The position numbers were made by a program, and so were the translations under genes. DNA of 64,000 bases from Rebecca billardiae RCC1528. Its lineage: Eukaryota; Protista; Haptophyta. A model generated the notes under the pieces. The model was not told the DNA's origin. It saw only the letters and a program-made list of their open reading frames with translations, and did not search any database. The stretch lies in assembly GCA_965240325.2 (NCBI GenBank), contig OZ251223.1, positions 2,356,001 to 2,420,000 of the forward strand, in the 5' to 3' direction. Below, piece after piece: positions 444 to 50,508 of the stretch. The first letter of the stretch is position 1. Each line of letters begins with the position of its first letter.

Positions 444-928
444 GGCCTCATAGCTGTTTTCGACCCAAAACAATCAAACGTCGCTCGGCAAACTCGTACT
501 CCAGCATACAAGAATGACAAAAATACTCACTTGTTTCACCCCCGGGGTATCTGATCCCACGTCCGTCCATCGACTTATGCGGAATGGCGTGGGCGCGCTT
601 ATTTCGTCAAGCGCGTAGTTGCTAATGCAGAGCACTATGGGCCAACGTACCCCTCGAAAAAGCGAAAACTCACCCTCCAACACCCCTCAAAATCGTCCCC
701 CGTCCCCTTTTCTTTGATCAAATGAGATCTTTTTGACAACGTAGTGAGGGCCCCCGGCGGGGCTCCACGCTACGCGCTCCGCCCTACACCGCGGGCCAAG
801 ATCTTTTTGAAACGTAGTGGTCAGTGAATAGTGGCCCGCGTCGCGCGCGGGGCCGTCGCAGGCCACGCTACGGCCCGGCCGCCGTTCCGCGCCGCCCGCC
901 GTGCAGCCGACCGCGCGGGCCATTAATC

Positions 929-2867
929 ATTATGGCGCACGGCCCCCCCCCGAAAGGTCTGAGCGTGAGCGAAAGCCGGGGGGGGGGGGCGGCGCACGTG
1001 CTCCGCAAAATCAAAAAGAGGATGCGCGCAGGATTTTGGGGATTTTTCGGTAGGTGGCCACCGCGTATGAGTGGATATCGCTGCCGCAATGATTGCGTTT
1101 GTACTGCCCCTTAATTTTAACGATAGTAACACTTAGGGGAATGCAGGATGGAATAGCACATAACACCAGCCGTGTGTTAGAACATTCCGTCATAGTAAGA
1201 TGCCTGAATTGTAAGAGCCTGAAACAGCTCGCCAACCATAGAAACGATAGGTTGGGTCGTCAGCTTTGATTCACGCGCTTCTGAAAAACAGCGTTTTAGA
1301 TTAGACGCATCGACACCTCTATCTGCGAGGATTAACAGCTCTCTGAAAACGAGTGTGTCCTGGACAACTTGAAAGGCGGAATACAATGTGCAGTTGTGAC
1401 CCAAGATTCTCATGCCCATATCAAGCATGAGTACTCATAGCACAATTCATCGGTGACTAGAATCAAGAGATCTTCAACTGAAACGTGATTTGGACGTCGA
1501 AGAGGCACGCACGGCCCAAGGCCGAAGAGGCACGGCTCGTTGCTTGCGGTTGGCAATGCGGGGTCTGCGCGGTGCGACGGGGAGCATTCCTTCTCCCGGG
1601 CGGCCACCACGGCCTCGGAGGTGGTGAGGAACGCGTCGGCGACCACGGCGTGGACCACCTCCGTCGCGCCGGACACCCCGGTCGCCCCTCACCGGACTCC
1701 ACCCTCGCCGCGCGCTGACCGTTTGCCGGTCGAGCCGTGCTTGCTGTGCTGCCTGCGCGGCCCGGCGCGTGCCCCCGCGTGGTGCCACAAGGCGGGTGCA
1801 GACGTGGCGGCGCGGTGGTGCGTGCGATCGGGGGACCCCACCTGAACTACGACACGGCTGCGCGCGCTCATCCGTGCTCATCACGGTGGTGGACGCGCGA
1901 CTCGACGCGCGCATCGAGCGCGGCAGGCCGGCACGGCTCGGCTCGGCAGCCTGCTCGAGGCGCGAAGGCGCGCACCGCGCGCTGCCCGTGGGCGCGACGA
2001 GATGGTGCATCATCGCGCTACTTGCCATCTTCCTCTCGCCACGCCTTCGACACGATGGCTGCGACTGCTGCTCGGAGGCGCGCTCCGGGGGGCTCACGCA
2101 CGCGTTCAGAATTCGGGCTCGGCGGTGACCGCGTGGACGAGGGGCAGCGCGGTGCACGGTGGCGGAGCGCGTGCGGAGCGCAGCCTACACCTACTACACG
2201 CTCCATCCAGACACATCGCGCATGCTCGCGCGACCTCCTCGGTCCATCACGCGCGCGTGCGCGCGCGAGCAGGTTTCGGCAGCTGCCGGGCGCGAGCGAG
2301 CACGGCGCGCCGCGTTGGCGCGCGCGCACCGATACCCGTGCGCAGCTCGACGAGCGAGCGCGGTGTGTTTCGACGCGCATGGAGAGACGCGGTGCATCGT
2401 GGTGGAGCGCGTGCGGAGCGCAGCCTACACCTACTACACGCTCCATCCAGACACATCGCGCATGCTCGCGCGACCTCCTCGGTCCATCACGCGCCCGTGC
2501 GCGCGCGACGGCAGGTGTGCACTCAGTGCAGCCGCCGGGCGCGAGCACGGCGCGCCGCGTTGGCGCGCGCGCACCGATACCCGTGCGCAGCTCGACGAGC
2601 GAGCGCGGTGGGGTTCGATGCCGCTGACCACCTCTGGCTCGGTCGCGCTCACGAGGCTGGTCGCGGGCCTAATCGTGCCGTGTATTGGCTGCCTGCTCGG
2701 TCATTGGTGAACTCGCGACGCCGACTACAAGTACAACCGCGAGTACGGTTACACGTATTCTGGTAGGCATGCTGTGATTGTGAGTTTATGCAACTGTGAT
2801 ATTCTGTACATAGGGCCGTGCGCCCTCAACTTCGTTGTTCACTACCCGAAGATCGGCGTAGCCGATC
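929..2867 (+). mobile_element. Non-autonomous Helentron/Helitron2-like element, copy A
   Basis: 5' end ATTATGGCGCACGGCCC; subterminal inverted copy GGGCCGTGCGCC at 2813-2824; terminal hairpin GATCGGC-GTA-GCCGATC at 2851-2867, followed by (AT)n. The 5' ~130 bp and 3' ~55 bp match 59213-61207 in reverse complement. Confidence 0.7.
2148..2610. repeat. ~240-bp direct tandem duplication inside copy A
   Basis: GGAGCGCGTGCGGAGCGCAGCCTACACCTACTACACG... recurs at ~2164 and ~2404, near-identical. Confidence 0.9.
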
Positions 2868-3717
2868 ATATATATATATATATATATGTCTAGCCGTCCT
2901 CGTGAACGCCGACGCCAACTGCTGGCCGAAGGTGGGCACGCCGCCTGGCATGTCGATGCCGAGGCGGCTGCGTGTGTTCCTACTCAGTGGGATTTACGTG
3001 TCCTGCTGCCGAAAGATGTTGGTCGGTGCACGCGACGCGCCACCCGCGTGCGAGCCGCCGCCGCCGGCGACGCAGGACGAGCATGGCTGGAGCCATCTCG
3101 CACGCCGCGCCTGGCGAAGCAGGCGGCAGAGGCCGGCGCCGGAAACCGATCTCCTGGGCGGCAGAACAACCCGGACAGACTGTTTGTCCGGGAGCAGCGC
3201 CCTTTGAGGCGATGGTCTGGTAGAGGGCGATGTGGCTGATGAGCGGCGCTGGCGCCCGGCGTTCTTGTCGTCCTCTTAGACAATCAGTTATTGTACCAAT
3301 AACCCCACATATACTAATAACAATAATTAAAATACTCACGGGCCGTGGACCACGGGCACGGCCGGCACGGTGGCCGTGCAGGGGCCAGCCTTAGTATGGC
3401 GCGTGCCGTGCCGCTGCTCCGAGCCTCACGGCAGCCCCGCGGACCGGGCCCGCGGTCACATGACACGTGTCAATGTCACGTCGAAGTGTCGAGCTTGAGA
3501 TCTGCGTCCGGATGGGACGGGAGAAAAGCGCTAGGAACGGGTGCAGGATGACCACGACCACCGATGCCAGCAGGAACAGGCAGGGAGCGAAACACACCTC
3601 TCGGTTCGCGACCGATTCAGCAGGCCCGCCGAGCCGGCTGGCCAGCCGCCCAGCCAGATCGTCGGGCCAGATGCGATCAGACCGCAGGCCCTCGCTTCCC
3701 GCAGCACATTGCACTCC

Positions 3718-5896: not shown

Positions 5897-6663
5897 GGTG
5901 GCCGGTGTGGCGGGCGCGGGGCTGCGGAGGGCCGGGGGGCGGGTGCGGAAGCACTGCGGTGCGAGCGAGGTCGGTGCTGGTGCCAAAGGCATTTCGGCGC
6001 GCGGGGTTGAAATCAAATTTCAAAACCCAGGTCCGGAGTGGCCCCGCCGGTCCCCCGGACCACGGCGGCCCGTCGTGCGTTTCGGGGGGAGAGGGGTTTG
6101 TCGCGAAACGGGCAGGATGGGGAAAAGGGGGGGGGGGGGGGGGGGGGCTCGCGGCCGCCGCGGGGAGGCCGGGACGGGCGCGGTCTCCACCTGAGGGCCG
6201 GGCGCTGCTCAGGAAGGAGGGCGGCCCACACTCCGCGTGTCGCTCCCCAGTGCCTCCGCACAGGCACACCGCAGGTGTTCGCCGTCGTGTCGGGATGAGC
6301 ATGCGCTTGGCGTCCGCACCCGGGGCCAGTCCTTTCATGGTCAGCAAGCAGGCGGGGGGGGGGCGTGCGTGTGCAAGCGCGGGTGGATATGTCGTGTCTG
6401 CGATATGCGGAGTGTTGGATGCGGGTTGCGCCGGTGCCCCAGGGCACCGGTGAGTGTGTAGCTGTTTCGGGCACGCCTCGCGAACGCGAGGCGCTGGAAG
6501 ACTGGCTGGTTTCGCGGGGTGCCTGGCTGACAAATGAACAACGAGCGAGGCGCGGTCCAAGGAATAAGGATTTTAGGTTTCGGAATTGTTTCGTCGACAG
6601 CTGATTTCCGTATAGTATTCGTGCCGGGGCACGAGGGCGGCCCTCCGGTGGCAGTCGTGAGCA

Positions 6664-7140
6664 ATGGCGAAGGAGGACAAGAAGGACAAGAAGAAGGACA
6701 AGAAAAAGGAGAAGCGGGACGAAGGAGAGAACGACGACGATGCGGATGCAAAGCGGCAGCGCGTCTCGCCGATTGCGCACCCACTGGCCAGCAAGAAGCT
6801 GACCAAGAGCGTGCTCAAGGTTGTCAAGAAGGCATCTGCCAGCAAGCTCGTCCGGCGGGGAGTGAAGGAGGTGGTGAAGGCGCTGAAGAAGAACGAGAAG
6901 GGCCTTTGCATCATCGCTGGTGATATCTCTCCGATCGACGTGATCTGCCACATCCCCGTCTACTGCGAGGAGAAGGATGTCCCCTACATCTACGTTCCAT
7001 CCAAAGAGGAACTGGGGACAGCGTCGCAGACCAAGCGGCCGACGAGCATTGTCATGATCAAGCCTGGCGGTGACAGTGAGCTGACAACAAGCTACGAAGA
7101 GTGCGTCAAAGAGGTGAAAGCCGTCGCCCCCGTATTTTGA
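6664..7140 (+). CDS. NHP2: H/ACA ribonucleoprotein subunit 2 (L7Ae family)
   Basis: IAHPLASKKL...RRGVKEVVKAL...IIAGDISPIDVICHIPVYCEE...PYIYVPSKEELG...TKRPTS is typical of NHP2. Confidence 0.93.
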   Translation: MAKEDKKDKKKDKKKEKRDEGENDDDADAKRQRVSPIAHPLASKKLTKSVLKVVKKASASKLVRRGVKEVVKALKKNEKGLCIIAGDISPIDVICHIPVYCEEKDVPYIYVPSKEELGTASQTKRPTSIVMIKPGGDSELTTSYEECVKEVKAVAPVF

Positions 7141-8247
7141 CGGCAGCTCTCTTGCTCAACGTCAGCAGCCTTGGTGCCAGGCAAGTTCACGGCGCCGCCA
7201 CTCGCGGACACGGTCACGGTCAGTGCTGAGCGCGCGTCGGACCGCGCCCGACCGACGACCTGAACGGGCAGGCGTCAGGATTCAATTAATATTTCCATTA
7301 TTATAAGGATCAATGATGCGGGCCCGGAGGGCCCGTGTCATCAGTGTCTGTACTGTGCACACTTGACCGACCGATCGGTCCCGCGGATTTCCCGGACTCG
7401 GACTCGGCGCCGACCGCGACCCGCGAGGCGCCCGAGTGCCCTCTACCGAGACTCTACGGTTAACGGTAATCAGAGTGGCTCCGGAGTCCGGTCCGACCGC
7501 GGGACTCGACCTCGCGGTCCGCGCCGTCAGCCGCTCGCACGGCTCAGCTTGACTCCGTGACGCCGTCAGCCCGTGCCACGCCCACTGCCCGAGTGGCCAC
7601 TGACGGTCACCGTACCCGTCGTCATTAAATATATATATATATACATGTGCACTGCTAGACGGGTGAACGGGTCTCAACTGAGAACTGTCAGTCCGGTATA
7701 GTCTGAATATCATCATTGGCTCAGCCTCAGGAAATAAGTAATTATATAATAACATGTCAACGGCATTGCGCATTATCATTTATTATAATAAAACATAATA
7801 CAAACCCACGGTAGTCGGTACCGAGCGCGGAGCCGCGGCGAGCGCAGCCAACTCGGTATTCGACTTCCATTAGTCGTCCGGTCACTGTTGATTGACTGTA
7901 ACAGCCCGTAACAGGACCGTCTGCATGAAACTTGATGATGAATCGCATTATTAATAATAATATTTTATTAGCAGCAGTTGAAAATTGTTCTCGACTACTC
8001 TGTCGGTTCTCGACTCTGATGTCGATCGATCACTAAGGAACAGCTCGCTCAGATGTACTCATTACTGGCTAACTTGCCACGTGCATTCCGTTCTCCGGTG
8101 CGGCACCTGCAATCTGTGGCATGCACGCACCGCGTCCGCAGCTTCGGAATTTGGAGTTGGACGGCGGGCATGGGCCTGCTGCCGCGCAGCTGCTCCGCAC
8201 TCAGACAGCGACACGCTCTCCCGACGCGCGATCGTGCGAGCTGGTCC

Positions 8248-9063
8248 CTAGGCAGGCGCATTGCCTTCCAGTGCGACCCACGCACAGTGCGTGAGGCTGC
8301 TGGTGAGTAGCGGGTAGCGCGCACGCAGCTGGGCAGGCGAGTTGCGAGCGCGCTGCTCAAGCGCCACGAGCTCGCGAATCCAATCAGGTTGAGCTGAGCT
8401 CGCCGGGAGACCGCGGCTGACAAGGGCGCTCTCGAGCGCCCCAAACACGTGCGCGCAGGCCATCAGACTCGCGTCGCCGATGAGCCTTGTCCCGGATGCA
8501 TGCAGAATCGCGCTTTCAGCTCGTGTGAGTACCAGCGTGAGCGAGCGCACGAGCATCTCTGACACTCGGTCTGCCAGACGAGAGTGCATCGCGCAGCATT
8601 CCACTATCTGTTGACAGCCCATTCGCCTCGCAAGCACCTCTCGCATCGGCTGTGTGTGGTCCAGCTCTGCCATCAGGCAGCCAATGGCCGTGTCGGCAAC
8701 GCCGAGCAGCGTGCTGTCCATGTGGAGGTTCGCATGCATACTCGCTGCCCCGAGCTCGCTGACGGCGGCCTGGATGTGCGACGCAGCTTGTTGTGGCCAG
8801 AGCAGGCCTCCGCCAGCAGCCAGCTTCGCGCACAGTTCGATCGCGCTCTGCCTGCGCTCTCCCTGCAGCTGGGGCAACGAGATTGAGGGGAGCGCAAGGC
8901 GCGCCGGAGGTGTGGACATGCCCACATCCAGCGGAGGCGTGGCCTCCAGCGATGGCGAGGAGGGTAAAGAGGCATGTCCTGCGAGCTGCTGTCGCCGGGC
9001 GCGCTCGCGGATGGTCACGACAGCCGCAGCCAGCTGCAATAGCTCGTTGTCGCCCGCATGCAT
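8248..9063 (-). CDS. Hypothetical helical protein
   Basis: ORF of 271 aa from ATG 9063 with protein-like composition, divergent from the CLC gene; no family recognised. Confidence 0.5.
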   Translation of the reverse strand: MHAGDNELLQLAAAVVTIRERARRQQLAGHASLPSSPSLEATPPLDVGMSTPPARLALPSISLPQLQGERRQSAIELCAKLAAGGGLLWPQQAASHIQAAVSELGAASMHANLHMDSTLLGVADTAIGCLMAELDHTQPMREVLARRMGCQQIVECCAMHSRLADRVSEMLVRSLTLVLTRAESAILHASGTRLIGDASLMACAHVFGALESALVSRGLPASSAQPDWIRELVALEQRARNSPAQLRARYPLLTSSLTHCAWVALEGNAPA

Positions 9064-9243
9064 GCTCGCGTCGGTCGATCGCTTGCCCGCCGCCGCCCGG
9101 GCCGGCGAGCTCAAGCGACCGCCCAGGCGCAAGCCACGCCACTGGATCGGCAGTGATCAAGAGCCCCGGGATCCGGGGCCGACCGACGACGTAATCTCAC
9201 CTACCTGAGCTGTGTGCGTCTCTTATTCTTAGTAAACTGTAGG

Positions 9244-11025
9244 ATGGCGGCGCGCGTCCTCTACTCGTGCATGTGGCTGAGCGCGGGCTCCGTTCTGGTC
9301 CAGCCACGAGCGGACGCACTGTGCCAACTGCATAGCGCTCCGCATCGTGCTCGCTTCCATGACGACCCGTGCGCCCGCGCCCCGGCAGTGTGGCGAGTGC
9401 CCACGGCACGTCGCGGTCGAATCGCCGCCGTCGACGCCAAGCCCCCGCAATCATCTGAGCAAACGCTGTTACCCCCGTCGATCCTCGGCGGTGAGCTCCT
9501 GAACAGCGTCGTCCTCTCTGTGGCCATCGGGGGCTCAACGGGGGTCCTGATCGCCTTCTTCAAGCGCTCGGTGCAGGCTGCAAACACGGCGCTGCACGCC
9601 CTACCGCCTCCACTCGCCGACGCGCCGGAGTGGCTGTTGCCCTTAGCTGGCGGGTGCTGCGTTGCCGTGATCCGCACGCTCGGCCAACAGCGCGACCTCG
9701 AGGGCGGGCTGGGTCGCATGCTCGATGCGGCGGCTGCGGCCCGACCCCTCGACCTGCAGGCAGTCGCCCTGCGCATCAGTGCGGCAGTGCTCACGCTGGG
9801 CTCAGGCTGCTCCCTCGGGCCCGAGGGGCCATCCGTCGAGCTCGGAGCGACCGTGGCGCGGGCGGCCGGAAAGTACGCACCCGAGCATGTCGTCGACGCA
9901 GACGCGCGCCGCAATCTCGTGTGCGCGGGTGCGGCTGCCGGAGTCGCCGCTGGCTTCAACGCGCCGCTTGCGGGCTGCGCCTTTGCCTTCGAGGTCGCGT
10001 CGGTGCTGCGGAGCCCGACGCGTGATGCAGCGCCGCCGAGCGGGCCTGGTGGCGTTGTGGATCTGGCCAGCTCGGCGCAGGCGAAAGCCGTGCTGCCACG
10101 CGCGGCTGGACGCGTCGCGCGGAGGTCGCGGTACCCTCCGCTCGTCTCTGTGCTGCTTGCAGCAGGAAGCTCTGCGCTCGTCGCGCGCCAGCTGCTCGAC
10201 CTCGAGCTCAGCTTCTCGAGCGTCGGCTCGCAACTGGCAGTGGCTACCGTTGCGGAGCTGCCAGTGTTCCTGCTCCTCGGGCTCGCATGTGGCATCGGCG
10301 CCGCTGGCTTCCAGCGCTGTCTCTCGCTGACACGTGCCGCCTTCGAGTCGGGCCCGGCGTCGGCGCTGCCCAGTGCGTTGCAGCCCATCCTCGGAGGCGC
10401 CGTCTGCTCCGTCATCTCCGCCGTTGCGCCGCAGGTGCGGTTCTCGAGCTACGGTACGCTGGGCGTGCTCGTGAGCTCCTCGTTCGCAGACGTGGATCCG
10501 ATCGAGCTCTACGGCGCAAAAGTGCTCGCGACCAGTGTGTGCCTGAGCTCCGGACTCGTCGGCGGGCTCTTCGCGCCATCCCTCTTCATCGGTGCGTCGC
10601 TGGGCGCGGCCTTTGGTACGGATGTGCTCGCAGGAGCGCCATCCAACCTCAACGTGGTCGGCGCGACGGCCGTGCTTGCCGCCGTGTTCGAGGCGCCGCT
10701 GACCAGCGCGCTCCTCGTGTACGAAATCACAAAGGAGGGCCAGCTCGTCCTGCCCAACTTGGTCACAGCGTCGCTGGCGAGCGTCGTGGCACGTGAGCTC
10801 GTGCGCAGAATGGAGATGGGCGCGGCAGCTGCTGCCGCCAATGCCGCAGCAGCGGCGCCGCAGTCAGCAGCAGACGCGACCGCTACGTCAAGCTTGCCGG
10901 CGTCAGCCCCATCAGCGGCGGGGTCGCAGGCGGGGATGGTTGGCAGGGCGCCGGGTGACGGGGATGATGGTCGTCGGGGCGGACCGCGGCCCGGCAGACG
11001 ACCGTCCACAAGTAGACGCCGCTGA
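9244..11025 (+). CDS. CLC-family chloride channel, prokaryote/CLC-e/f-like, no CBS domains
   Basis: Motifs TLGSGCSLGPEGPSVELG, GAAAGVAAGFNAPLAG, GGLFAPSLFIG and APLTSALLVYEIT; N-terminal targeting-like extension. Confidence 0.92.
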   Translation: MAARVLYSCMWLSAGSVLVQPRADALCQLHSAPHRARFHDDPCARAPAVWRVPTARRGRIAAVDAKPPQSSEQTLLPPSILGGELLNSVVLSVAIGGSTGVLIAFFKRSVQAANTALHALPPPLADAPEWLLPLAGGCCVAVIRTLGQQRDLEGGLGRMLDAAAAARPLDLQAVALRISAAVLTLGSGCSLGPEGPSVELGATVARAAGKYAPEHVVDADARRNLVCAGAAAGVAAGFNAPLAGCAFAFEVASVLRSPTRDAAPPSGPGGVVDLASSAQAKAVLPRAAGRVARRSRYPPLVSVLLAAGSSALVARQLLDLELSFSSVGSQLAVATVAELPVFLLLGLACGIGAAGFQRCLSLTRAAFESGPASALPSALQPILGGAVCSVISAVAPQVRFSSYGTLGVLVSSSFADVDPIELYGAKVLATSVCLSSGLVGGLFAPSLFIGASLGAAFGTDVLAGAPSNLNVVGATAVLAAVFEAPLTSALLVYEITKEGQLVLPNLVTASLASVVARELVRRMEMGAAAAAANAAAAAPQSAADATATSSLPASAPSAAGSQAGMVGRAPGDGDDGRRGGPRPGRRPSTSRRR

Positions 11026-11505: not shown

Positions 11506-12444
11506 TCAGCCATGCCGCAGACGTGCCCAGCCCAGGTAGTTTGCACGCATGCGATGGTGCGACTGTTGAAAATCCCCGAGAGGCACGCGGCCGCCAAGCA
11601 GGCGCGCGACATCGATTGTGGGGGTCATCCCGACAAAGTGCGCACTGTCCACCTCAAAGCCGTGCCTTTGCAGCAGCAGCGAAAGCTCTTCAGGTCGGAT
11701 GTACAGCCGCCAATCATGCGTTCCGGGCGGCACGATCCTGAGGACGTCTTGGGCGAGCACGATGGTGAGCACGTAAGAGAGGACAGTGCGGTTGATTGTG
11801 TCAAAGATCAGCACGCCGCCAGGTTTCAGCACGCGCGCCACCTCCGACACGGCTGTCGGTAGGTCGTGCAGGTGCTCGAGGATATCCGACATGAGCACGC
11901 CATCAAACGAGCCAGCTTCGAATGCGGACAGGTCATACGCACTGCCCGTGTCGTAGCGCAGGTTCGAGGCCTTTCGGGATGCTGCCCGCTCACGCGCATA
12001 GGCAATTGCTTTCTCGGACAGGTCAATGCCATGCATGGGGTAGCCCAGGCCAGCCAGCTCCTCTGTGACGATTCCTCCACCGCATCCAATGTCCAGGAAG
12101 CGACGCGCCCCCGACGATGGCTCACAGCGCAGCTGATCGCGCCAGGCGGCGTGGAAGTAAGGCACGCGCGCTGGATTGAGAAGCTGCAGGCTCGCAAGGT
12201 GCTCGTTGTCCTCACGGTGCCAGCTGGCAGCCCACGCGTCATCGTCGTACAGCGCGTTGTCGATCGTGGTTTCGGATTCATCGATTCGCGCAAGTCGGTC
12301 AGGAAGCTCTGGAGGCGGGACGAGCTCAGGCAGCGCGCGCAGCACCCGGTGGACGGGCCAGAAGGCGTGCCACGGCTGCCACCCCCGAGTCGTCGCGTGC
12401 AGCGCGCGGCGCGCTCCGCGCGCGAACGGCGCGAGTGGAGCCAT
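11506..12444 (-). CDS. COQ3: Ubiquinone biosynthesis O-methyltransferase (UbiG/COQ3)
   Basis: LNPARVPYF, LDIGCGGG, DILEHL, LKPGG, TINRT and VPPGTHDW..YIRPEEL; mitochondrial-like N-terminus. Confidence 0.9.
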   Translation of the reverse strand: MAPLAPFARGARRALHATTRGWQPWHAFWPVHRVLRALPELVPPPELPDRLARIDESETTIDNALYDDDAWAASWHREDNEHLASLQLLNPARVPYFHAAWRDQLRCEPSSGARRFLDIGCGGGIVTEELAGLGYPMHGIDLSEKAIAYARERAASRKASNLRYDTGSAYDLSAFEAGSFDGVLMSDILEHLHDLPTAVSEVARVLKPGGVLIFDTINRTVLSYVLTIVLAQDVLRIVPPGTHDWRLYIRPEELSLLLQRHGFEVDSAHFVGMTPTIDVARLLGGRVPLGDFQQSHHRMRANYLGWARLRHG

Positions 12445-12564
12445 CGCTGTGCCGTCGCTGCGACAGCAGATGCGCGCCTTCGCCTCGCCGTCGTCGGGAG
12501 GCTCTTCGAAGTCCGGTCACCGGGGCTCGTCAGGAGCCACCCAGGGCAGTCACTACAAAAAATC

Positions 12565-14460
12565 CCCGCCAGCGGAGCATCGGGCAAGACCCAGACCCTC
12601 CGCCGGCGGAGATTTTTGTGGCCACGAAAAATCCCCGCTGGCGGAGCATGGAATGCTCCGCTGGCGGAGCCTGGGCCGTTGCCGAGGATTGACACAACAA
12701 ACTAGTTACCAGAAGTCTGTCAACCACCGAACAGCAGTCACCTCCGCTGGCGGAGCTCGCTAATGAGCCGTGCCTTTTGTAAACTAATACACTTGGCCGA
12801 CTTGAACTGAGCTCCGCTGGCGGAGCTTCGGGGGCGCCGAATGCCATTCTTGATGACCCACCTGACTTGAACTGAGCTCCGCTGGCGGAGCGTCGGTGGT
12901 CAGCGCCGTGTGTCATATTGGAGAAATAATGGTAATAAGCCTTTCAACGCATTCATACTCTGCTGTGCCACACATTCAACCTCCGCTGGCGGAGCTCACT
13001 GGCCTATTCGACTTGAACTGAGCTCCACTGGTGGAGCCTCGGCTGCGCCGAATGTCCTTAATCGATGACCCATTCTCGACTTGAGCTGAGCTCCCCTGGC
13101 GGAGCTTTGGTGGCGCCGCATGTCATATTGGAGTAACGCGGAAGCGTCAACCGTAGTCATATCTATATTGATACTCAACCTCCGCTGGCGGAGCTCGCGT
13201 ACCTACTAGTATTCAACTTTAACTGAGCTCCGCTGGCGGAGCCTCTGCTGTGTCGAATGTCCTTATCGATGGCCCACTTCTTGACTTGATGAGCTGCTGA
13301 GCTCCGCTGGCGGAGCTTTGGTGGCGCCGCATGTCATATTGGAGTATGATGCGAAGTCGTTAACCGTAATCATATCCATATATATCGACACTCAACCTCC
13401 GCTGGCGGAGCTCACGGACCTATTCGACTTGAACTGAGCTCCGCTGGCGGAGCCTCGGGCTGTGTCGAATGTCCTTATCGATGGCCCACATCTTGACTTG
13501 AGCTGAGCTCCGCTGGCGGAGCTTTGGTGGCGCCGCATGTCATATATTGGAGTAATGCGAAATCGTCAACAGCAATCATATCCATATTGGCACTCAACCT
13601 CCGCTGGCGGAGCTTGCTGACCTATTCGACTTGAACTGAGCTCCGCTGGCGGAGCCTCGGCTGCGCCGAATGTCCTTATCGATGGCTCACTTGACTTGAG
13701 CTGGGCTCCGCTGGCGGAGCTTTGGTGGCGCCGCATGTCATATTGGAGTAATGCAACGCCGTTAACTACTACCGTAATCATATCCATATTGACACTCAAC
13801 CTCCGCTGGCGGAGCTCGCGGGCCTATTCAACTTGAACTGAGCTCCGCTGGCGGAGCCTCGGCTGCGCCGAATGTCTTTATCGATGGCCCACGACTTGAC
13901 TTCAGCTGAGCTCCGCTGGCGGAGCTTTGGTGGCACCGAATGTCATATTGGAGTAATGCGAAGTCGTTAACCGTAATACTATCCATATTGACACTCAACC
14001 TCCGCTGGCGGAGCTCGCGGGCCTATTCAACTTGAACTGAGCTCCGCTGGCGGAGCCTCGGCTGCGCCGAATGTCTTTATCGATGGCCCACGACTTGACT
14101 TGAGCTGAGCTCCGCTGGCGGAGCTTTGGTGGCGCCGCATGTCATATTGGAGTAATGCAACGCCGTTAACTACTACCGTAATCATATCCATATTGACACT
14201 CAACCTCCGCTGGCGGAGCTCGCGGGCCTATTCAACTTGAACTGAGCTCCGCTGGCGGAGCCTCGGCTGCGCCGAATGTCTTTATCGATGGCCCACGACT
14301 TGACTTCAGCTGAGCTCCGCTGGCGGAGCTTTGGTGGCACCGAATGTCATATTGGAGTAATGCGAAGTCGTTAACCGTAATACTATCCATATTGACACTC
14401 AACCTCCGCTGGCGGAGCTCGCGGACCTATTCAACTTGAACTGAGCTCCGCTGGCGGAGC
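12565..14460 (+). repeat. Left-arm array: ~200-bp units, each with three CTCCGC-TG-GCGGAG hairpins (~30 motifs)
   Basis: Unit starts (ACTCAACCTCCGCTGGCGGAG) at ~12976, 13173, 13390, 13593, 13795, 13993, 14198 and 14397. Confidence 0.92.
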
Positions 14461-15099
14461 CTCTGCTTGTGGTTTGCTGCAATTGGGGCTGGGCAGCCTG
14501 GGCTCAGCATGGGGCAGCTGTTCACAGCCCAGGCGGGGCGTCACCGCCTGTGAGCCGTCGGTGGGCAGGGCCGACGGCGTCGCAGAGCTCCTGCGTGGGA
14601 GCAGCGCGTTATTGAGGAAGCGATCAAGGTCGAGAAGGAAGGGGCAAGCAGCAGGGGCTGCCTGTACGTTTGTACATGCCTCCACACCGGTGCACATCAC
14701 CCTTGCTCACTGCAGTCGTGAACAGTGCTGCCACTCATCTCATCATCGCTCACCATGCAGTGACGGCCGAGCTGCGGCGAACTCTCACAGGCACCGAACA
14801 CGCATCGGCTGTGCCCGCTGGTGCTGGCATGCGCTGTCCTCTACTTGCTGTCGGACAGCAAGGAGACGGCACAGCCGCATCTGCGAGCGGGCGAGGTGAT
14901 GCTGTCCAGTGTCCTCTGCTCAGCGAGGCTGAGAGGCTGAGCACGGATCACGGATAGTGAGCCCTGGTATCTCAACGCATCCAGGAGAGCAGTTGGTGCA
15001 TGCCTGTGCTCAGACGTGCAGGACCAACCATCCGGTGCTGATTCAAGCACCCGCGCCAACAGCGGCGGCACTCAACTCCACGCTGCTGATGCGGCCGCA

Positions 15100-16572
15100 C
15101 AGCTGCAGGGATGGTACCACGGCGGGCGACGGCGGGCGCTGCAGCTGGCAGCTCGGTGGTGCCTGCCCGAGGGGCCTGGGCGCCGGGCGCACCGAGCGCG
15201 ATGACGCCTCTCGCATCGCCCAGCGCGCTGGAGCCGCTGTCATCCGACGCTGCTGTGCCCGCGCCCAGCTTGGGCTGCAGCAGCTGCGCTCGACTCTGCG
15301 CAGAGTGCGGCGGCAGCAGAGGGGATGGTGCCACCGCGGGCTGCGGCAGGCGCTGCAGCTGGCAGCTCGGTGGTGCGCGCCCGAGGGGCCTGGGCGCTGG
15401 GCGCAGCGAGCGCGGTGACGTTGCTCGCCTCGCCCAGCGCGCTGGAGCCGCTGCCACCGGGCGCTGCTGTGCCCGCGTCGAGCGTGGGCTGCCGCAGCTG
15501 CGCTCGACTCCGCGCCGAGTGCGGTGGCAGCAGGGATGTTGCCACGTCGGGCGGCGGCTATCACTTTGGCTGGCAGCTCGGTGGTGCCTGCCCGAGGGGC
15601 CTGGGCGGTGGACGCACCGAGCGCGATGACGTTGCTCGCCTCGCCCAGCGCGCTGGAGCCGCTGCCATCCGGCGCTGCGGTGTCCGCGCCCAGCCGGAGC
15701 AGCACGAGGTGCGTTCGACTCCGCACCCGTGCGGCGGCAGCAGCAGGGATGGTACCACGGCGCGAGCGGCGGCAGTCGCTGCAGCTGGTAGCTCGGCGGT
15801 GCCTACCCGAGGGACCTGGGCGACGGACGCGTCGAGCGAGCTGACGCCCCTCGCTTCCCCTATCACGCTCGAGCCGCTGCCATTTGATGCTGCTGCGCCG
15901 TTCGGGCAGCTGCAGACTCTGCGCAGTCTGCGCTCGACTCCACGCCGCGTGCGGCCGCAGGCAGCAGCAGCAGCGGGCCCGAGGGGCCTGGGTCACGGAC
16001 GCACCGAGCACAGTGACGCCTCTCGCCTCGCCCAGCGCGCTGGAGCCGCTGCCACCGGGCGCTGCTGCGCCCGCATCCAGCTTGGGCTGCAGCAGGCCGC
16101 TCAATCAACTTCACGCCGAGTGCGGCGGCAGCAGCAGGGATGTTGCCACGGCGGGCGGCGGCTATCACTTTGGCTGGCAGCTCGGTGGTGCCTGCCCGAG
16201 GGGCCTGGGTGGTGGACGCACCGAGCGCGGTGACGTTGCTCGCCTCGCCCAGCGCGCTGGAGCCGCTGCCATCCGGCGCTGCGGTGTCCGCGCCCAGCCG
16301 GAGCAGCACGAGATGCGCTCGACTCCGCACCCGTGCGGCGGCAGCAGCAGGGATTGTACCACGGCGAGCGGCGGCAGTCGCTGCAGCTGGTAGCTCGGCG
16401 GTGCCTGCCCAAGGGACCTGGGCGACGGACGCGCCGAGCGAGCTGACGCCCCTCGCTTCCCCTATCACGCTCGAGCCGCTGCCATTTGATGCTGCTGAAC
16501 CGTTCGGGCAGCTGCGGACTCTGCGCTCGACTCCACGCCGCGTGCGGCCGCAGGCAGCAGCAGCAGCAGGCT
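15100..16572 (+). repeat. GC-rich ~210-215-bp tandem satellite with a ~600-bp higher-order duplication
   Basis: GCTGG(C/T)AGCTCGG(T/C)GGTGC recurs at ~15143, 15358, 15569, 15784, 16173 and 16386; inverted copies lie at ~17440-18330. Confidence 0.85.
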
Positions 16573-18978
16573 GGTAATTAACAGCTGCTGCTCAGATCTC
16601 CGTGACTGCTCGGTTGCTGCGTATGAGCCAGGTGAGTGAGCCGCTGAGTCGCAGGGGCCGCGTGAATTGACTTGCGACCGCACGCCGGTATATAGGCTTA
16701 AGACGGCGTACGTCCGAGTCCCGATCAGCAGCGCAGGAGTTTTGAGAACGCGGTGACGAGTCACACGCAGCTACTCTTATTATGATGGCGCTATACTTTT
16801 TTCTGTACGTATAGTGGTAGTAAGTTACGACTACGCTGCCAGCCTCGCCCTCAGCATTACATTGACGGCGTATATGGTAGCGCAGGTCCGCCTGATGACC
16901 GTTTTATTGCGCGCGCATCTTCATGATGATGACGATATGACGATAACGACTCCTCCGACTCCTGAGTCACATAAGTGTGACACCGCCACTGGATGACACG
17001 GGCTACTTACGTACTCAGCTCAGATCATGCGCGCCTGCTATTCGTAGTCGGGCTCCGGTCAGCGGGGAGCGCGCGGCGCATCATCATCATCAGTCGCTAT
17101 CTGATGCATATCCGCGGCGCAGTGATGTCGTAGTACTGATGATGCGTGCGCTGAGATCTGGGCCGCGGCACTTCGGCGCGCCTTGCTCGGCCTCACCGAC
17201 GCCGGGCCGTACTTGTTCGCGCGCCCGGCGCCGGGCTAGCTCAAAGAGCTGACCGCAGCGGCTCCCGTGCCCCGGAAGGCCTGCGGCCCTCACAGGTCAT
17301 TGGCAGGCAGCAGTGTCCGGGGCTGAGGCCTGCCGGGTTCTCCCCGATTCGAATTCACCAATGTGAGCGATGGTACCGCCTGCTGCCGTCAGCCGGCGGA
17401 AGAAGTGTCACAACGGCTGCTGCTGGCCAGCATATCGGACGCGTGCATCGGCGTCACCGCATTGGGCGCGTCTGCCGCCCAGGCCCCTCGCGCGCACACA
17501 ACCGAGCTGATCGCTGCATCCACCTCCGCCGCCGCCAGTGGCGCCTTCCCTGCTGCTGCAGCCACATTCGGCGCGAGTCGAGCGCAGCTGCTGCTGCCTA
17601 GGCCGGTCACGCCCCTCGGGCGCGCACCACCGAGCTGCCAGCTGCATCGACCGCCACCACCCGCCGAGGCATCATCCCTCCCACTGGCGCGGAGTCGAGC
17701 GCAGCTGCCAGCTGTGACAGCTAGCTGCCCCGGCGGGGCGCGGAGCCGCGGACACCGCAGCGCCGGATGGCAGCGGCTCCAGCGCGCTGGGCGAGGCGAG
17801 CAACGTCATCGCGCTCGGTGCGTCCACCGCCCAGGCCCCTCGGACAGGCACCACCGAGCTGCCAGCCAAAGTGATAGCCGCCGCCCGACGTGGCAACATC
17901 CCTGCTGCCACCGCACTCGGCGCGGAGTCGAGCGCAGCTGCGGCAGCCCACGCTCGACGCGGGCACAGCAGCGCCCGGTGGCAGCGGCTCCAGCGCGCTG
18001 GGCGAGGCGAGCAACGTCACCGCGCTCGCTGCGCCCAGCGCCCAGGCCCCTCGGGCGCGCACCACCGAGCTGCCAGCTGCAGCGCCTGCCGCAGCCCGCG
18101 GTGGCACCATCCCCTCTGCTGCCGCCGCACTCTGCGCAGAGTCGAGCGCAGCTGCTGCAGCCCAAGCTGGGCGCGGGCACAGCAGCGTCGGATGACAGCG
18201 GCTCCAGCGCGCTGGGCGATGCGAGAGGCGTCATCGCGCTCGGTGCGCCCGGCGCCCAGGCCCCTCGGGCAGGCACCACCGAGCTGCCAGCTGCAGCGCC
18301 CGCCGTCGTCCGCCGTGGTACCATCCCTGCAGCTGTGCGGCCGCATCAGCAGCGTGGAGTTGAGTGCCGCCGCTGTTGGCGCGGGTGCTTGAATCAGCAC
18401 CGGATGGTTGGTCCTGCACGTCTGAGCACAGGCATGCACCAACTGCTCTCCTGGATGCGTTGAGATACCAGGGCTCACTATCCGTGATCCGTGCTCAGCC
18501 TCTCAGCCTCGCTGAGCAGAGGACACTGGACAGCATCACCTCGCCCGCTCGCAGATGCGGCTGTGCCGTCTCCTTGCTGTCCGACAGCAAGTAGAGGACA
18601 GCGCATGCCAGCACCAGCGGGCACAGCCGATGCGTGTTCGGTGCCTGTGAGAGTTCGCCGCAGCTCCGAGCTCGGCCTTCACTGCATGGTGAGCGATGAT
18701 GAGATGAGTGGCAGCACTGTTCACGACTGCAGTGAGCAAGGGTGATGTGCACCTGTGTGGAGGCATGTACAAACGTACAGGCAGCCCCTGCTGCTTGCCC
18801 CTTCCTTCTCGACCTTGATCGCTTCCTCGACGCGCTGCTCCCACGCATGAGCTCTGCGACGCCGTCGGCCCTGCCCACCGACGGCTCACAGGCGGTGACG
18901 CCCCGCCTGGGCTGTGAACAGCTGCCCCATGCTGAGCCCAGGCTGCCCAGCCCCAATTGCAGCAAACCACAAGCAGAG

Positions 18979-20796
18979 GCTCCGCCAGCGGAGCTCAGTT
19001 CAAGTTGAATAGGTCCGCGAGCTCCGCCAGCGGAGGTTGAGTGTCAATATGGATAGTATTACGGTTAACGACTTCGCATTACTCCAATATGACATTCGGT
19101 GCCACCAAAGCTCCGCCAGCGGAGCTCAGCTGAAGTCAAGTCGTGGGCCATCGATAAAGACATTCGGCGCAGCCGAGGCTCCGCCAGCGGAGCTCAGTTC
19201 AAGTTGAATAGGCCCGCGAGCTCCGCCAGCGGAGGTTGAGTGTCAATATGGATATGATTACGGTAGTTAACGGCGTTGCATTACTCCAATATGACATGCG
19301 GCGCCACCAAAGCTCCGCCAGCGGAGCTCAGCTCAAGTCAAGTCGTGGGCCATCGATAAAGACATTCGGCGCAGCCGAGGCTCCGCCAGCGGAGCTCAGT
19401 TCAAGTTGAATAGGCCCGCGAGCTCCGCCAGCGGAGGTTGAGTGTCAATATGGATATGATTACGGTAGTTAACGGCGTTGCATTACTCCAATATGACATG
19501 CGGCGCCACCAAAGCTCCGCCAGCGGAGCTCAGCTCAAGTCAAGTGGGCCATCGATAAGGACATTCGGCGCAGCCGAGGCTCCGCCAGCGGAGCTCAGTT
19601 CAAGTTGAATAGGCCCGCGAGCTCCGCCAGCGGAGGTTGAGTGTCAATATGGATATGATTACGGTAGTTAACGGCTTTGCATTACTCCAATATGACATGC
19701 GGCGCCAGCAAAGCTCCGCCAGCGGAGCTCAGCTCAAGTCAAGACGTGGGCCATCAATAAGGACATTCGGCGGAGCCGAGGCTCCGCCAGCGGAGCTCAG
19801 TTCAAGTCGAATAGGCCAGTGAGCTCCGCCAGCGGAGGTTGAGTATCAATATGGATATGATTACGGTTGACGGCTTCGCATTACTCCAATATGACATGCG
19901 GCGCCACCAAAGCTCCGCCAGCGGAGCTCAGCTCAAGTCGAATAGGTCAGTGAGCTCGGCCAGCGGAGGTTGAGTGTCAATATGGATATGATTATGGTTA
20001 AAGGCTTCACATTATTCCCATAAATGGCATGCGGCGCCACCAAAGCTCCGTCAGCGGAGCTCAGCTCAAGTCAAGACGTCGGCCATCGATAAGGACATTC
20101 GACACACCCCGAGGCTCCGCCAGCGGAGCTCAGTTAAAGTTGAATACTAGTAGGTCGTCCGCGAGCTCCGCCAGCGGAGGTTGAGTCTCAATATAGATAT
20201 GACTACGGTTGACGCTTCCGCGTTACTCCAATATGACATGCGGCGCCACCAAAGCTCCGCCAGGGGAGCTCAGCTCAAGTCGAGAGTGGGTCATCGATTA
20301 AGGACATTCGGCGCAGCCGAGGCTCCACCAGTGGAGCTCAGTTCAAGTCGAATAGGCCAGTGAGCTCCGCCAGCGGAGGTTGAATGTGTGGCACAGCAGA
20401 GTATGAATGCGTTGAAAGGCTTAGCATTATTTCTCCGATATGACACACGGCGCTGACCACCGACGCTCCGCCAGCGGAGCTCAGTTCAAGTCAGGTGGGT
20501 CATCAAGAATGGCATTCGGCGCCCCCGAAGCTCCGCCAGCGGAGCTCAGTTCAAGTGCCGAGTGTATTCGTTTACAAAAGGCACGGCTCATTAGCGAGCT
20601 CCGCCAGCGGAGGTGACTGCTGTTCGGTGGTTGACAGACTTCTGGTACCATAACTAGTTTGTTGTGTCATTCCTGCAAGCCCAGGCTCCGGCCAGCGGAG
20701 CATTCCATGCTCCGCCAGCGGGGATTTTTCGTGGCCACAAAAATCTCCGCCGGCGGAGGGTCTGGGCCCCTTGCCCGGATGCTCCGCTGGCGGAGA
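18979..20796 (-). repeat. Right-arm array of CTCCGC-CA-GCGGAG hairpin units
   Basis: Reverse complement of the left array, with a different mix of unit variants. Confidence 0.92.
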
Positions 20797-20842
20797 CTTT
20801 TTGTAGTGACTCTTCTGAGCCACCCGTCCCAGGAGCCCAGTA

Positions 20843-23108
20843 CAGGTGCTATGGCCTATTTCTGGACGATGCCGTTTTCTGGACAAGCGCGTGGCCATGG
20901 TGAAGCGCACCGACGAGTCGCCCGCCAAGCGGCGCAAGACGCCAGCAGCGCGCATCGCCAACCCCCGGAACCAGGCGGAGTACGCCATCAACAAGTCCAA
21001 CCACGACGAGAAGCAGCGGCAGCTGCGCACGGCGCTGAAGTGGTGCCGCGATGAGGCAGACGCGGGGCGTGCGAAGGGCGCGGTCGACCGCGCGATCAGC
21101 TCGGATCGGTGGCCCGCCTTCATCACGTCTACCTCAGCCCGCCGGACACGACGGGGCTGACGCAGCCGCTCGACCAGATCAACCAGGTGCTGCACTACTA
21201 CTGCTCGGTGAGTACCAAGAAGTGGGCGCGCTACCAGCAGTCGAAGCTGCTCGCGCAGCGCATGCGCGAGGTGCGCGCCGATCTCGGCGACGATGAGATC
21301 AACCTCGAGGACGCAGTCGACGGCGACGGCGATGACGACGAGGATGAGGGCGGCAGCGACGACGACGGCGACGGGGGCGACGACTCGGACGAGGAGGGGC
21401 GGCGGCGCGCGGCGGGCGAGGGCGCGAAGAAGTCTCTCTCGAAGCGCGACTTCCTCCTTCTCCTGGGTACTCGTGGGAGGGCTTCTGTAAGAAGGAGAGC
21501 GTCATCGGCGCCTTCAAGCGCTGCGGCATCACCGCGAGCGGCGTCGACATCGGCTTGATGCAGCAGGACAAGTTCGCGGCCGCCGATCTGCTGCTCAACC
21601 CCGAGCGCGTGTTCGAGGCTGCTCCCGCGGCCGCGGAGGGCGCCGGCCACCGCGGTGCGGTGCGCCGCGCGATCGACTACGGCGCCGGTGGCATCCCGGC
21701 CGAGTACACGCCCGTGTCCTCCACCCACCGTGCCGGCTCGACGATCGACCTGCAGCACCGTCTCTCCGAGCAGCAGAAGGTGATCGAGAGCCTCCGTGCT
21801 CAGATCAAGTGGCACGAGACGACGGTCAAGACGCCCAACGCCGAGGAGGCGGAGGCGCTGCTGCCGTTCGACGTCGTGGGCAAGAAGGTCCAGGGCGGCC
21901 GGAAGCGCGCAAACAAAGAGAAGTTCGGCTCGGCCGAGCTGGGGTGCTTCCTCGAGGGCCAGGAGGCAGCCGATGAGGCGGCTGTGACGGCGGCCGCCGA
22001 TGCCGAGGCAAAGCGCGCTGCGAAGGCGCTACGGCGCGCCGAGACCGAGGCCGCGGCAGCTGCGAACTTCGACCATCGCGATGCGCTCGAGCGCGCCTTC
22101 AAGGCCTGCGAGAGGGCGCGCGCCAACTCGGCTGAGCCATGCGCGTGCGGCGCAGATTTGGCCGCGACGTGCACGTGCCGGACGCATCACTTCTGCCCGC
22201 ATTGCAGGCGCGTGCAGAAGACGGCATGCAAGAAGCAGAAGTGCCAGCCGCATCTCGTGGGTGCGCCTTCGGACGAGGCTGTCATCGACATCGACATGAC
22301 AATCACGATCAGGATGACGCTTAGACCCTAGCAGTAGGTTTATATCACGGGGGTAGCTGTCGTTAACGACTCGCCGCAGCGGAGTGATGACAAGCCTAGT
22401 CTTTGATATATGATCGGCCGGGACGAGACTGCTCGCGTACTCGTCTGTCTCGTGTGTCACGGCAGTCCAGTGCTCCGCACGCATCCGACACACAGGGGCG
22501 TCAGCATCGGCCGACGCCGACGGCGCGCCGCTTCAGGCCGCGCGCAGCAGCGCACGGTTACCCCGGAGTGGATGGCGACGCTGTCGCAGGAGGGTGTGGG
22601 CTCACAGAACTGGTGATCTAGCACATGGTCGGCTGATGAGACCGATCGCGTGCAGAGCTCAGCTATCAGATAGCTGCATGACAACGCCGGTGCTTTGTGA
22701 GAACGCGCGCGCGTAGCATGTGCCAGGCACCGAACGCAGGTGAATGGACTACTGTAGTGGAGCAGAGAACGCGTGGTATATGCCTGGACTAGGTCGTCAA
22801 GTAAGTCCAGCGAGCTACTGCGGCCCTTGCTGTCCGGTCTCAAGCATTCCTGGCCCACCCAACATGCGCGCACAGCTTCACGACCGCACGTGCACGGTTT
22901 GTCCAGAAAACGGCATGTGCCCAGATCTGGGCTATGACGAAGTCGAGCACGTTGCTCACCAACGCGATGGCCGATGACGATGAGACTTCGTGTGCCTACC
23001 TTTAGCTCCACGCTGGTTGGCGTGGTGGCATCGTGGGCGGGCTAGTCCGCCATGGCTGGACGTGAGAGCTACTTGGATTTTCCGTCCAGAAATAGGCCAT
23101 AGCACCTG
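20843..23108 (+). mobile_element. pogo/Fot1-like (Tc1-mariner superfamily) transposon, internally deleted
   Basis: Perfect 26-bp TIR CAGGTGCTATGGCCTATTTCTGGACG / 23083-23108; TA on both flanks (20841-42, 23109-10); inner IR ATGCCGTTTTCTGGACAA / ~22900-22918. Confidence 0.92.
20897..22331 (+). pseudogene. Frameshifted pogo-type DDE transposase remnant
   Basis: YLSPPDTTGLTQPLDQ resembles the pogo LPxxTTxxLQPLD motif, followed by VIGAFKRCGI, a coiled coil and a Cys-rich C-terminus. The N-terminal catalytic part is missing and there are at least two frame changes. Confidence 0.8.
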
Positions 23109-46900: not shown

Positions 46901-48366
46901 ATCAGCCTGAAACGGCCGAGCGGGCTCGACGCGAGCCCGCTTGGGGAAACAGCAGCAGTGCGTTCCACCCGCCGGAGTGCACGCGACCCCTTGGCGGGCC
47001 CTCGGGCGCCAACCGTTGCGGCCTATTGGCTCGTACCGCGTGGGGGGGCGTAGGGTGGACCGATGAACCCTCTCGCACCGCCCGGGCCGACCTCGACACC
47101 CGTCACTCGCTCGCGCGCGGCCGCGGAGCCGCACGAGCGCACCGCCGAGCACCAGGCCGGCACCCGCGCCGGCCAAGCTGGCGAGAATGGCGCTGATGAA
47201 TGGCGGCGAAGGCGCGCCAGCGTTGCGCGCACGAGGAATCACCACGCTCCGCCTGCCGCCACCGCCCCCGCTGTCATCTTGCGCCCTGACCCGCCTCCTG
47301 AGCGGCATGCGCGGTGGGCTGGGGAGTGCCAGGCGGCCATGCTGATCAGCCGCCGCCACCATGGCGCGCGCGCTCACGGCGCAGCACCTCCTGGAGGTAG
47401 TTCCGTGGCACAACGCCAGTGAAGATAAGCACCGTCGCTTGCGGCTGCGATGCGCGCCTTGGCGCGCCGAGACTGGCAACGGCAGGAGATGCATCTGCCA
47501 CACACCGCTGCTGACTGCGAAGTGCGGTAGACCGCAGACAACGCACTCTGCGCAGAGCTCGGCAGCAGCCTCAAGCCTGGCCACACAAACACTCAGGACA
47601 CAGGCACCAGCGCCCGTGCGCGGCAGCTTACTCAGGGACTGGCCTTCTGACATGTCTAGGCAGCTATACAGTACCGCCATGTAACACACAAGTAGCACGC
47701 GCGGGCTGGAACTGCGGTGCCAACCAAGGTTTGGAGCCGCGTCAGCTCGGGGACGCCGCATGTCCTCGGCGCACAGCACCAGCTGCCACCTTCCGCAGTC
47801 TGCGAAGGGCGCTGAGGCCGCAACAGCTCACTGACACACACATGGACCGTGACAAAAGTCCACAACAAGCCACATGCCACTTGAGCCGGGTCCACGCGCG
47901 CGCGCCATGGTGGCGGCGGCTGATCAGCATGGCCGCCTGGCACTCCCCAGCCCTCCGCGCGTGCCGCTTGGGAGGCGGGTCAGGGCGCAAGATGACAGCG
48001 GGGGCGGTGGCGGCAGGCGGAGCGTGGTGATTCCTCGTGCGCGCAACGCTGGCGCGCCTTCGCCGCCATTCATCAGCGCCATTCTCGCCAGCTTGGCCGG
48101 CGCGGGTGCCGGCCTGGTGCTCGGCGGTGCGCTCGTGCGGCTCCGCGGCCGCGCGCGAGCGAGTGACGGGTGTCGAGGTCGGCCCGGGCGGTGCGAGAGG
48201 GTTCATCGGTCCACCCTACGCCCCCCCACGCGGTACGAGCCAATAGGCCGCAACGGTTGGCGCCCGAGGGCCCGCCAAGGGGTCGCGTGCACTCCGGCGG
48301 GTGGAACGCACTGCTGTTATCCCGGTGGCCCTCGCGGCGAGGGCCACTCGGCCGTTTCAGGCTGAT
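46901..48366. mobile_element. 1.47-kb non-coding foldback element
   Basis: Arms 46901-47372 and 47897-48366 are near-perfect reverse complements; terminus ATCAGCCTGAAACGGCCGAG; ~525-bp unique spacer. Confidence 0.85.
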
Positions 48367-48495
48367 TAGACGTGGCTGACAATGAACGGTGCGAGCTGTG
48401 TAGGTCACGTGGCGGCCGAGGGCACGAGTTTGCACATCATTCTGCCCTCGGCCCGCTGCGAACAGGATGATGATCGCCAGTGGCAGCGATTCCGA

Positions 48496-50473: not shown

Positions 50474-50508
<35 letters not shown>

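Follow-up and report, generated by a model that had tools for sequence, protein, structure and literature searches.

Evidence for a recently active, non-autonomous family of foldback-type DNA transposons in the haptophyte Rebecca billardiae

In this study, we analyzed a 64-kb window of the genome of the haptophyte Rebecca billardiae RCC1528 (C3:2356001-2420000 of the 72-Mb, 41-contig genome), which contains a palindromic element of about 8.3 kb. On the basis of current results, this element is very probably one copy of a recently active, non-autonomous family of foldback-type cut-and-paste DNA transposons. An earlier reading of the same DNA, hereafter the original prediction, had described it as a foldback form of a CACTA element and as a candidate for an undescribed system. 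Its palindromic structure with inverted arms was confirmed, and so was its nature as a foldback-type mobile element with kilobase-scale modular arms, as the same architecture was present in all 16 complete copies of the family. The two other proposals had to be given up. The CACTA word is internal to the element, the ends are CAG...CTG and the target duplication is 7 bp in most copies, which does not agree with CACTA membership. The family is new and the kind of element is already known, like Galileo or Foldback in Drosophila; long repetitive arms, protein-less copies, 7-bp duplications and array variation have all been described for Galileo (PMC3573991, PMC3688188). With regard to the enzyme that moves the family, a P/Galileo-like transposase is tentatively favoured because the duplication is mostly 7 bp, the architecture resembles that of Galileo and the genome contains one intact P-type gene. 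Membership of the P superfamily is putative.

The boundaries of the element were defined by its target duplication. The CACTA words that had been taken as the termini are present, CACTACAAAAA at 12551 and its reverse complement TTTTTGTAGTG ending at 20808; however, the true ends lie 9 bp further out on each side, and the element occupies 12542-20817. It starts with CAGGGCAGT-CACTAC and finishes with GTAGTG-ACTCTTCTG. A perfect 7-bp duplication, AGCCACC, bounds it directly outside the conserved 9-bp tips, with the left copy at 12535..12541 and the identical right copy at 20818..20824. In all 34 ends identified in the genome, the 9-mer before CACTA was either CAGGGCAGT (end A) or CAGAAGAGT (end B). 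The former was identical in all A ends, and the latter had one altered base, the first or the second, in three copies (L008, L009 and L012). Since the direct repeats of the target sit outside these 9-mers, CACTA is internal to the element. The AGT/ACT triplets next to it had been read as either a 3-bp target duplication or an extension of the inverted repeat. They are invariant in all 34 ends and are therefore element sequence that extends the inverted repeat; the 3-bp duplication was not sustained.

The most direct competitor of our interpretation is a CACTA/EnSpm foldback derivative in which the same end is used twice and which a Transposase_21-type enzyme moves with 3-bp duplications. It would fit the CACTAC motif near each end and the subterminal repeat arrays, which resemble those of En/Spm. 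But CACTA/EnSpm elements begin and end exactly with CACTA/CACTG and make 3-bp, rarely 2-bp, duplications. Here, the motif lies 9 bp inside a boundary that is defined both by the duplications and by uninterrupted paralogous target sites, the invariant triplets belong to the element, 7 bp is the commonest duplication length, and the A and B ends differ consistently. The autonomous Transposase_21 partner that had been suggested was also not found: no match to this domain (PF02992) was present in the 72-Mb genome, a weak argument given that control genomes were equally silent. Thus, a CACTA origin appears extremely unlikely. This corrects a tempting misclassification, as the word CACTA close to a terminus does not mark the terminus itself.

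Further investigation of the whole assembly revealed that the element belongs to a family. The 34-nt end pattern matched 34 ends at zero mismatches, and its reversed control matched none. Allowing up to 3 mismatches returned only the same 34 ends, as did a search with the 19-nt tips CAGGGCAGTCACTACAAAA and CAGAAGAGTCACTACAAAA at up to 2 mismatches. These ends form 16 complete elements, that is, inverted end pairs 7.0-9.4 kb apart on 11 contigs, and two solo ends on C10 and C12. Many sites of the genome match the initial 400 bp of the element at 92-98%. All copies are foldbacks. They fall into a main family of 13 pairs and a subfamily of three (C21, C6 and C5:1.58 Mb), whose termini are 85-88% identical to those of the window copy. 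Seven main-family copies have lengths of 6,987-6,989 bp, and alignments between them show only 2-12 differences; this near-identity suggests recent movement of the family. Copy length otherwise varies through the copy number of arrays and satellites and, in L011, through a nested element of 2,406 bp. No match to the end pattern was found in the JGI metagenomes.

Perfect inverted segments of 920 and 438 nt, such as those of the window copy, resemble the product of a fold-back error in assembly or of a single palindromic rearrangement. The 16 complete copies nevertheless share a common architecture on 11 contigs and have differing flanks and target duplications, and seven of them are nearly equal in length. 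An assembly artefact or a one-off join of two identical ends is excluded by the copy number and by the recurrence of two-kind ends, and we assign practically no probability to it. A one-off rearrangement had also been put forward as an outcome that would refute the original prediction, and the same recurrence answers it. The proposed search for further copies with 3-bp duplications thus yielded copies in number, with duplications mostly of 7 bp.

Several observations were made at individual family loci. The nested element in L011 (L011:1208-3613, element positions 717-3122; C27) lies in arm A, its inverted ends begin AGACCCCTTCAGGGACGG and its own duplication is apparently about 2 bp (AT). An old, degenerate end-A fragment, CAGGGCAGTCAAAACAAG..., occupies L014:2988-3310 (C17) and breaks off at the start of CAGGGCTGGGAG sequence, possibly the tip of another element. 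Two copies of a flanking repeat, 99% identical to each other, carry family insertions at positions 46 bp apart, one in the left flank of L008 (C5:2.48 Mb) and the other at L013:1-491 (C10:1.72 Mb), and the flank of L001 is an 82% relative of this repeat. The repeat may be favoured as a target, or the flanks may have been duplicated.

The internal architecture of the window copy agreed with the modular arms and roughly 2-kb centre described before, each arm being about 3 kb long and composed of a tandem array, a unique body of about 630 bp and a 214-bp GC-rich satellite. On the plus strand, arm A contains an array of 8.2 copies of a ~205-bp unit (12800..14467; Tandem Repeats Finder), the unique body (14470..15100), which is 99% identical across main-family copies, and the satellite (15105..16560; Tandem Repeats Finder rows 15105-15883 and 15977-16560), which extends into the centre. 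The core of the centre (16560..17450, plus strand) is unique, non-coding and of lower GC, and the 16 complete copies of the family were the only places where it occurred. On the minus strand, arm B has the satellite at 17747..18327 (100% complementary to 15108-15688), the body at 18335..18969 (99.4% identical to that of arm A) and an array of palindrome-bearing units of ~202-209 bp at 18972..20354, the satellite and the array again being delimited by Tandem Repeats Finder. Two inner arm pairs show 100% inverted identity, 14769-15688 with 17747-18666 (920 nt) and 14172-14609 with 18830-19267 (438 nt), and the outer arm parts are 89-97% alike. Long inverted arms of tandem repeats, a short centre and no visible coding capacity place the element in the foldback-like class.

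Comparison of the two arms revealed that the family has two kinds of end. One A and one B outer 9-mer were present in every copy except that on C6, and the two 9-mers differed at three positions in all but one copy. Between the arms of a single element, identity over the outer 250 bp was 93-96%; across main-family copies the values were 96-98% for A versus A and 98-99% for B versus B. In a tree of ends, the B ends formed a single clade nested among the A ends. The bodies of the two arms of one element were 99.4-100% alike and only 96% like the body of the other subfamily, and the inner arms were 99-100% alike. Such high body identity within an element, together with A and B outer identities that are conserved across copies, suggests that the inner arms evolve in concert while the difference between the ends is retained. 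Thus, the idea that the element consists of two copies of the same end applies to its inner arms only, as the outer ~250 bp are distinct for A and B across copies. The orientation of the core relative to the A and B ends was constant in 13 of 13 main-family copies; in two subfamily copies, the core is flipped with respect to the outer 9-mers.

The most conspicuous feature of the arms is a 14-bp palindrome, CTCCGC-YR-GCGGAG, with 58 sites in the window copy (30 in arm A and 28 in arm B). Among them, 49 were exact, seven had one mismatch and two had a double compensatory change; the latter two represent one repeat unit, mirrored on both arms. The sites are confined to the outer 1.9 kb of each arm, with three per ~205-bp unit (spacing 42/68/90 bp in arm A). 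All 49 exact sites of the 64-kb window lie within the element, compared with 0.008 expected, and the palindrome was found neither elsewhere in the window nor in 12 unrelated loci. End A (12542..12669, plus strand) consists of the tip, CACTACAAAAAATCCCC and a cluster of four palindromes that begin at element positions 23, 57, 92 and 115; its single-strand fold has a predicted energy of -46.7 kcal/mol (z = -6.5). End B (20687..20817, minus strand) likewise has its tip, then CACTACAAAAAGTCTCC and a palindrome cluster. A unit of A-tract plus palindrome occurs three times at each tip, in direct, inverted and direct orientation. The palindromes are probably docking sites for a transposase that acts in trans, a reading modelled on the THAP sites in the arm repeats of Galileo (PMC3688188).

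We also compared the target duplications of the copies; in the canonical copy L005, the right flank (C1:2421161 onward) reads as N. An exact 7-bp duplication was observed in seven copies (the window copy, L001, L002, L006, L007, L010 and L016), for which the chance of an exact 7-mer at a fixed offset is 6e-5 per copy. In L016 it was confirmed by an uninterrupted paralogous site with a single GTCGGAA. Six of seven bases match in L003, and seven of seven match in L012 if its B end lost 4 nt. L009 is without a duplication. In the remaining five copies the duplications are shorter and directly abut intact or near-intact tips: 6 bp in L004, 5 bp in L017, 4 bp in L015, 3 bp in L011 and 2-3 bp in L008. 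Uninterrupted paralogous sites were found for L015, L011 and L008; at those of L015 and L011 no target base was lost and the tips are intact, so that loss of bases from an original 7-bp duplication cannot by itself account for the short ones. The possibility that flanks had been exchanged between copies was also checked, and no pair of copies fits such an inversion signature.

The element itself lacks a transposase, as originally described. The five longest open reading frames (ORFs) within it had no Pfam match above the cut-off, a sub-threshold Fungal_trans_2 match in one element ORF was taken as chance, and Rfam gave no match in 12000-21500. No relics were detected when P-type and MULE proteins were compared with all element copies by tblastn, and the degenerate fragment of L014 and arm fragments of L013, L018 and L019 contain no coding sequence. 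At the level of the genome, Pfam searches covered four transposase families (Transposase_21, P, hAT and MULE), none of which was present in or beside any copy.

With these data, two further candidates for the mover could be evaluated. A non-autonomous hAT-type element with an atypically short duplication would agree with end A, whose first bases, CAGGG, conform to YARNG, the terminal consensus of hAT elements. Unequal ends and short subterminal repeats are features of hAT elements, and duplications of 5-8 bp are reported for some groups of them, which also speaks for this candidate. On the other hand, end B begins CAGAA and falls outside the consensus, the 8-bp duplication of hAT elements was seen in none of the copies, and the only match to the C-terminal hAT dimerisation domain in the genome (PF05699; C17:765118-765351) lies in an 89-codon frame with a stop. 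A hAT origin is thus improbable. The second candidate, a Foldback/Mutator-type element that is moved by a MULE transposase of the genome, appears even less credible and is in our opinion very unlikely. It would be in line with the foldback architecture and with the intact MULEs of the genome, one of which lies within arrays of another 14-bp palindrome. MULE Pfam domains had two matches, the second at C10:1918801-1919085. However, the intact MULE of 3.8 kb at L023:2866-6631 (C23), with 124-bp inverted ends that are 99% complementary, makes a 9-bp duplication (CCGCAGGCA), and the mode of the family is 7 bp with no 9-bp duplication in any copy, so that a MULE is an unlikely mover; the ends and palindromes of the MULE are also unrelated to those of the family. 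It should be noted that this MULE is inserted in long arrays of the palindrome CCGCAGSCCTGCGG and that a second ORF of 1,121 codons adjoins it at 6601-9966 (minus strand).

The P type is represented by a single RNase H match in the genome (PF21787, 31.9 bits, above the cut-off). It sits in an intact ORF of 1,317 codons, C21:1532842-1536795 (L020:3643-7596, minus strand), with a protein-atlas score of 0.96 to P-transposase clusters. The ORF is single copy in the genome according to a search with a 718-aa part of it, has no PDB sequence match, and its protein has no relative in the JGI metagenomes.

Several results weigh against assigning the family to a P/Galileo-like enzyme, and some of them also concern the role of the palindromes. 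First, the only P-type ORF has neither ends nor motifs in common with the family: there is no palindrome within 30 kb of it, and its flanks contain no convincing inverted ends, with 7-bp duplications only as GC-rich chance matches. The ORF could represent either a domesticated gene, which would count against the assignment, or a stationary transposase of the P type. Second, an autonomous copy with shared ends was not found in the whole assembly, either with the 19-nt tip (<=2 mismatches) or with the 34-nt pattern (<=3 mismatches). Third, the five shorter duplications listed above extend the range to 2-3 to 7 bp. This spread is not typical of P-type elements. Finally, the compensatory double change was seen only once, and the palindrome could also have a structural role. 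Variable duplication length, verified at three sites, and the absence of a partner with shared ends would both be accommodated if the enzyme belonged to a transposase group that is undescribed or has escaped recognition and cuts its target flexibly (2-3 to 7 bp), or if the enzyme were missing from the assembly. As this is an argument from absence, and the genome-wide search covered four Pfam families, we regard it as a less probable, though serious, alternative.

Comparison with known systems also bears on the preference for a P/Galileo-like enzyme. Galileo elements have long repetitive inverted arms and 7-bp duplications, and most of their copies are protein-less and consist of two arms; the arms grow by tandem repeats and by recruitment of inner sequence, and some copies are bounded by unmatched 7-mers (PMC3573991). 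Their arm repeats hold several THAP binding sites (PMC3688188). The duplication is 7 bp in 1360 and Galileo and 8 bp in P (PMC3698922). The present family resembles a set of 'two-TIR' or 'recombinant-TIR' protein-less copies of Galileo (TIR, terminal inverted repeat) in its repetitive arms, 7-bp mode, variable array lengths, some unmatched flanks and short sites repeated in the arms. It differs in that no transposase-bearing copy with these ends is present in the assembly, in that its arms are about 3 kb instead of up to ~1.2 kb, and in its two-kind outer ends, its duplications of 2-3 to 7 bp and its haptophyte host. Compared with the P superfamily as a whole (7- or 8-bp duplications; autonomous members encode a transposase with THAP and RNase H parts and a GTP-binding insertion), the mode agrees, whereas the duplications of five copies are shorter, at 2-3 to 6 bp, and for three of these copies the length was verified by means of paralogous empty sites.

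Similarity to other hairpin-shaped elements was also evident. Foldback (FB), Tetris and Tm1 are hairpin-shaped and usually non-coding, with tandem-array arms and inner modules or satellites that are shared or exchanged, and the present family is like them in shape, arms and lack of coding sequence. The FB elements of Drosophila have been linked to Mutator-type enzymes and, like the Mutator superfamily, duplicate 9 bp (8-11) of target; the present family differs from FB in its duplication length. Within the same genome, a sister foldback family (L024-L031; C19, C36, C22, C16, C17, C15 and C32) contains versions of the ~630-bp body and 214-bp satellite that are 86-88% identical to those described above, but its outer arms are unrelated and carry AAACTGGG...CCCAGTTT hairpins; CTCCGC-YR-GCGGAG palindromes were not found in it.

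We suggest the following model for transposition by a P/Galileo-like enzyme. A transposase produced elsewhere would recognise the conserved tips and might be concentrated on the element by the ~30 palindromes of each arm and the three A-tract-plus-palindrome units of each tip. It would then cut at the CAG/CTG ends and insert the element into staggered cuts of the target. Exchange between the arms could keep the inner arms 99-100% alike while array lengths drift. A broader and rather unlikely scenario is that several foldback families with unrelated arms, the present one among them, are mobilised in trans by the resident single-copy P-type gene (C21:1532842-1536795), which lacks inverted ends of its own, or that the present family belongs to an unrecognised transposase group with a flexible 2-3 to 7-bp cut. 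If the P-type version were true, it would represent a Galileo-like system outside animals that is run by a stationary enzyme.

A literature search gave no publication on haptophyte foldback elements; the hairpin-shaped elements of 7-9 kb documented here form a recently active family in one such alga. Elements of this type give rise to inversions in Drosophila when copies recombine with one another, and hairpin transcripts are possible. The family also provides a clean case for finding the enzyme behind the orphan foldback families of this genome.

Finally, the surroundings of the window copy were inspected. An ORF for a CLC voltage-gated chloride channel is located at 9214-11025 (plus strand), and one for a class I SAM methyltransferase at 11506-12444 (minus strand). 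The element was inserted 91 bp upstream of the start codon of the methyltransferase gene and may alter its expression. Elsewhere in the window, 10 kb at 48000-58000 have a G+C content of 76-83%, far above the window average.

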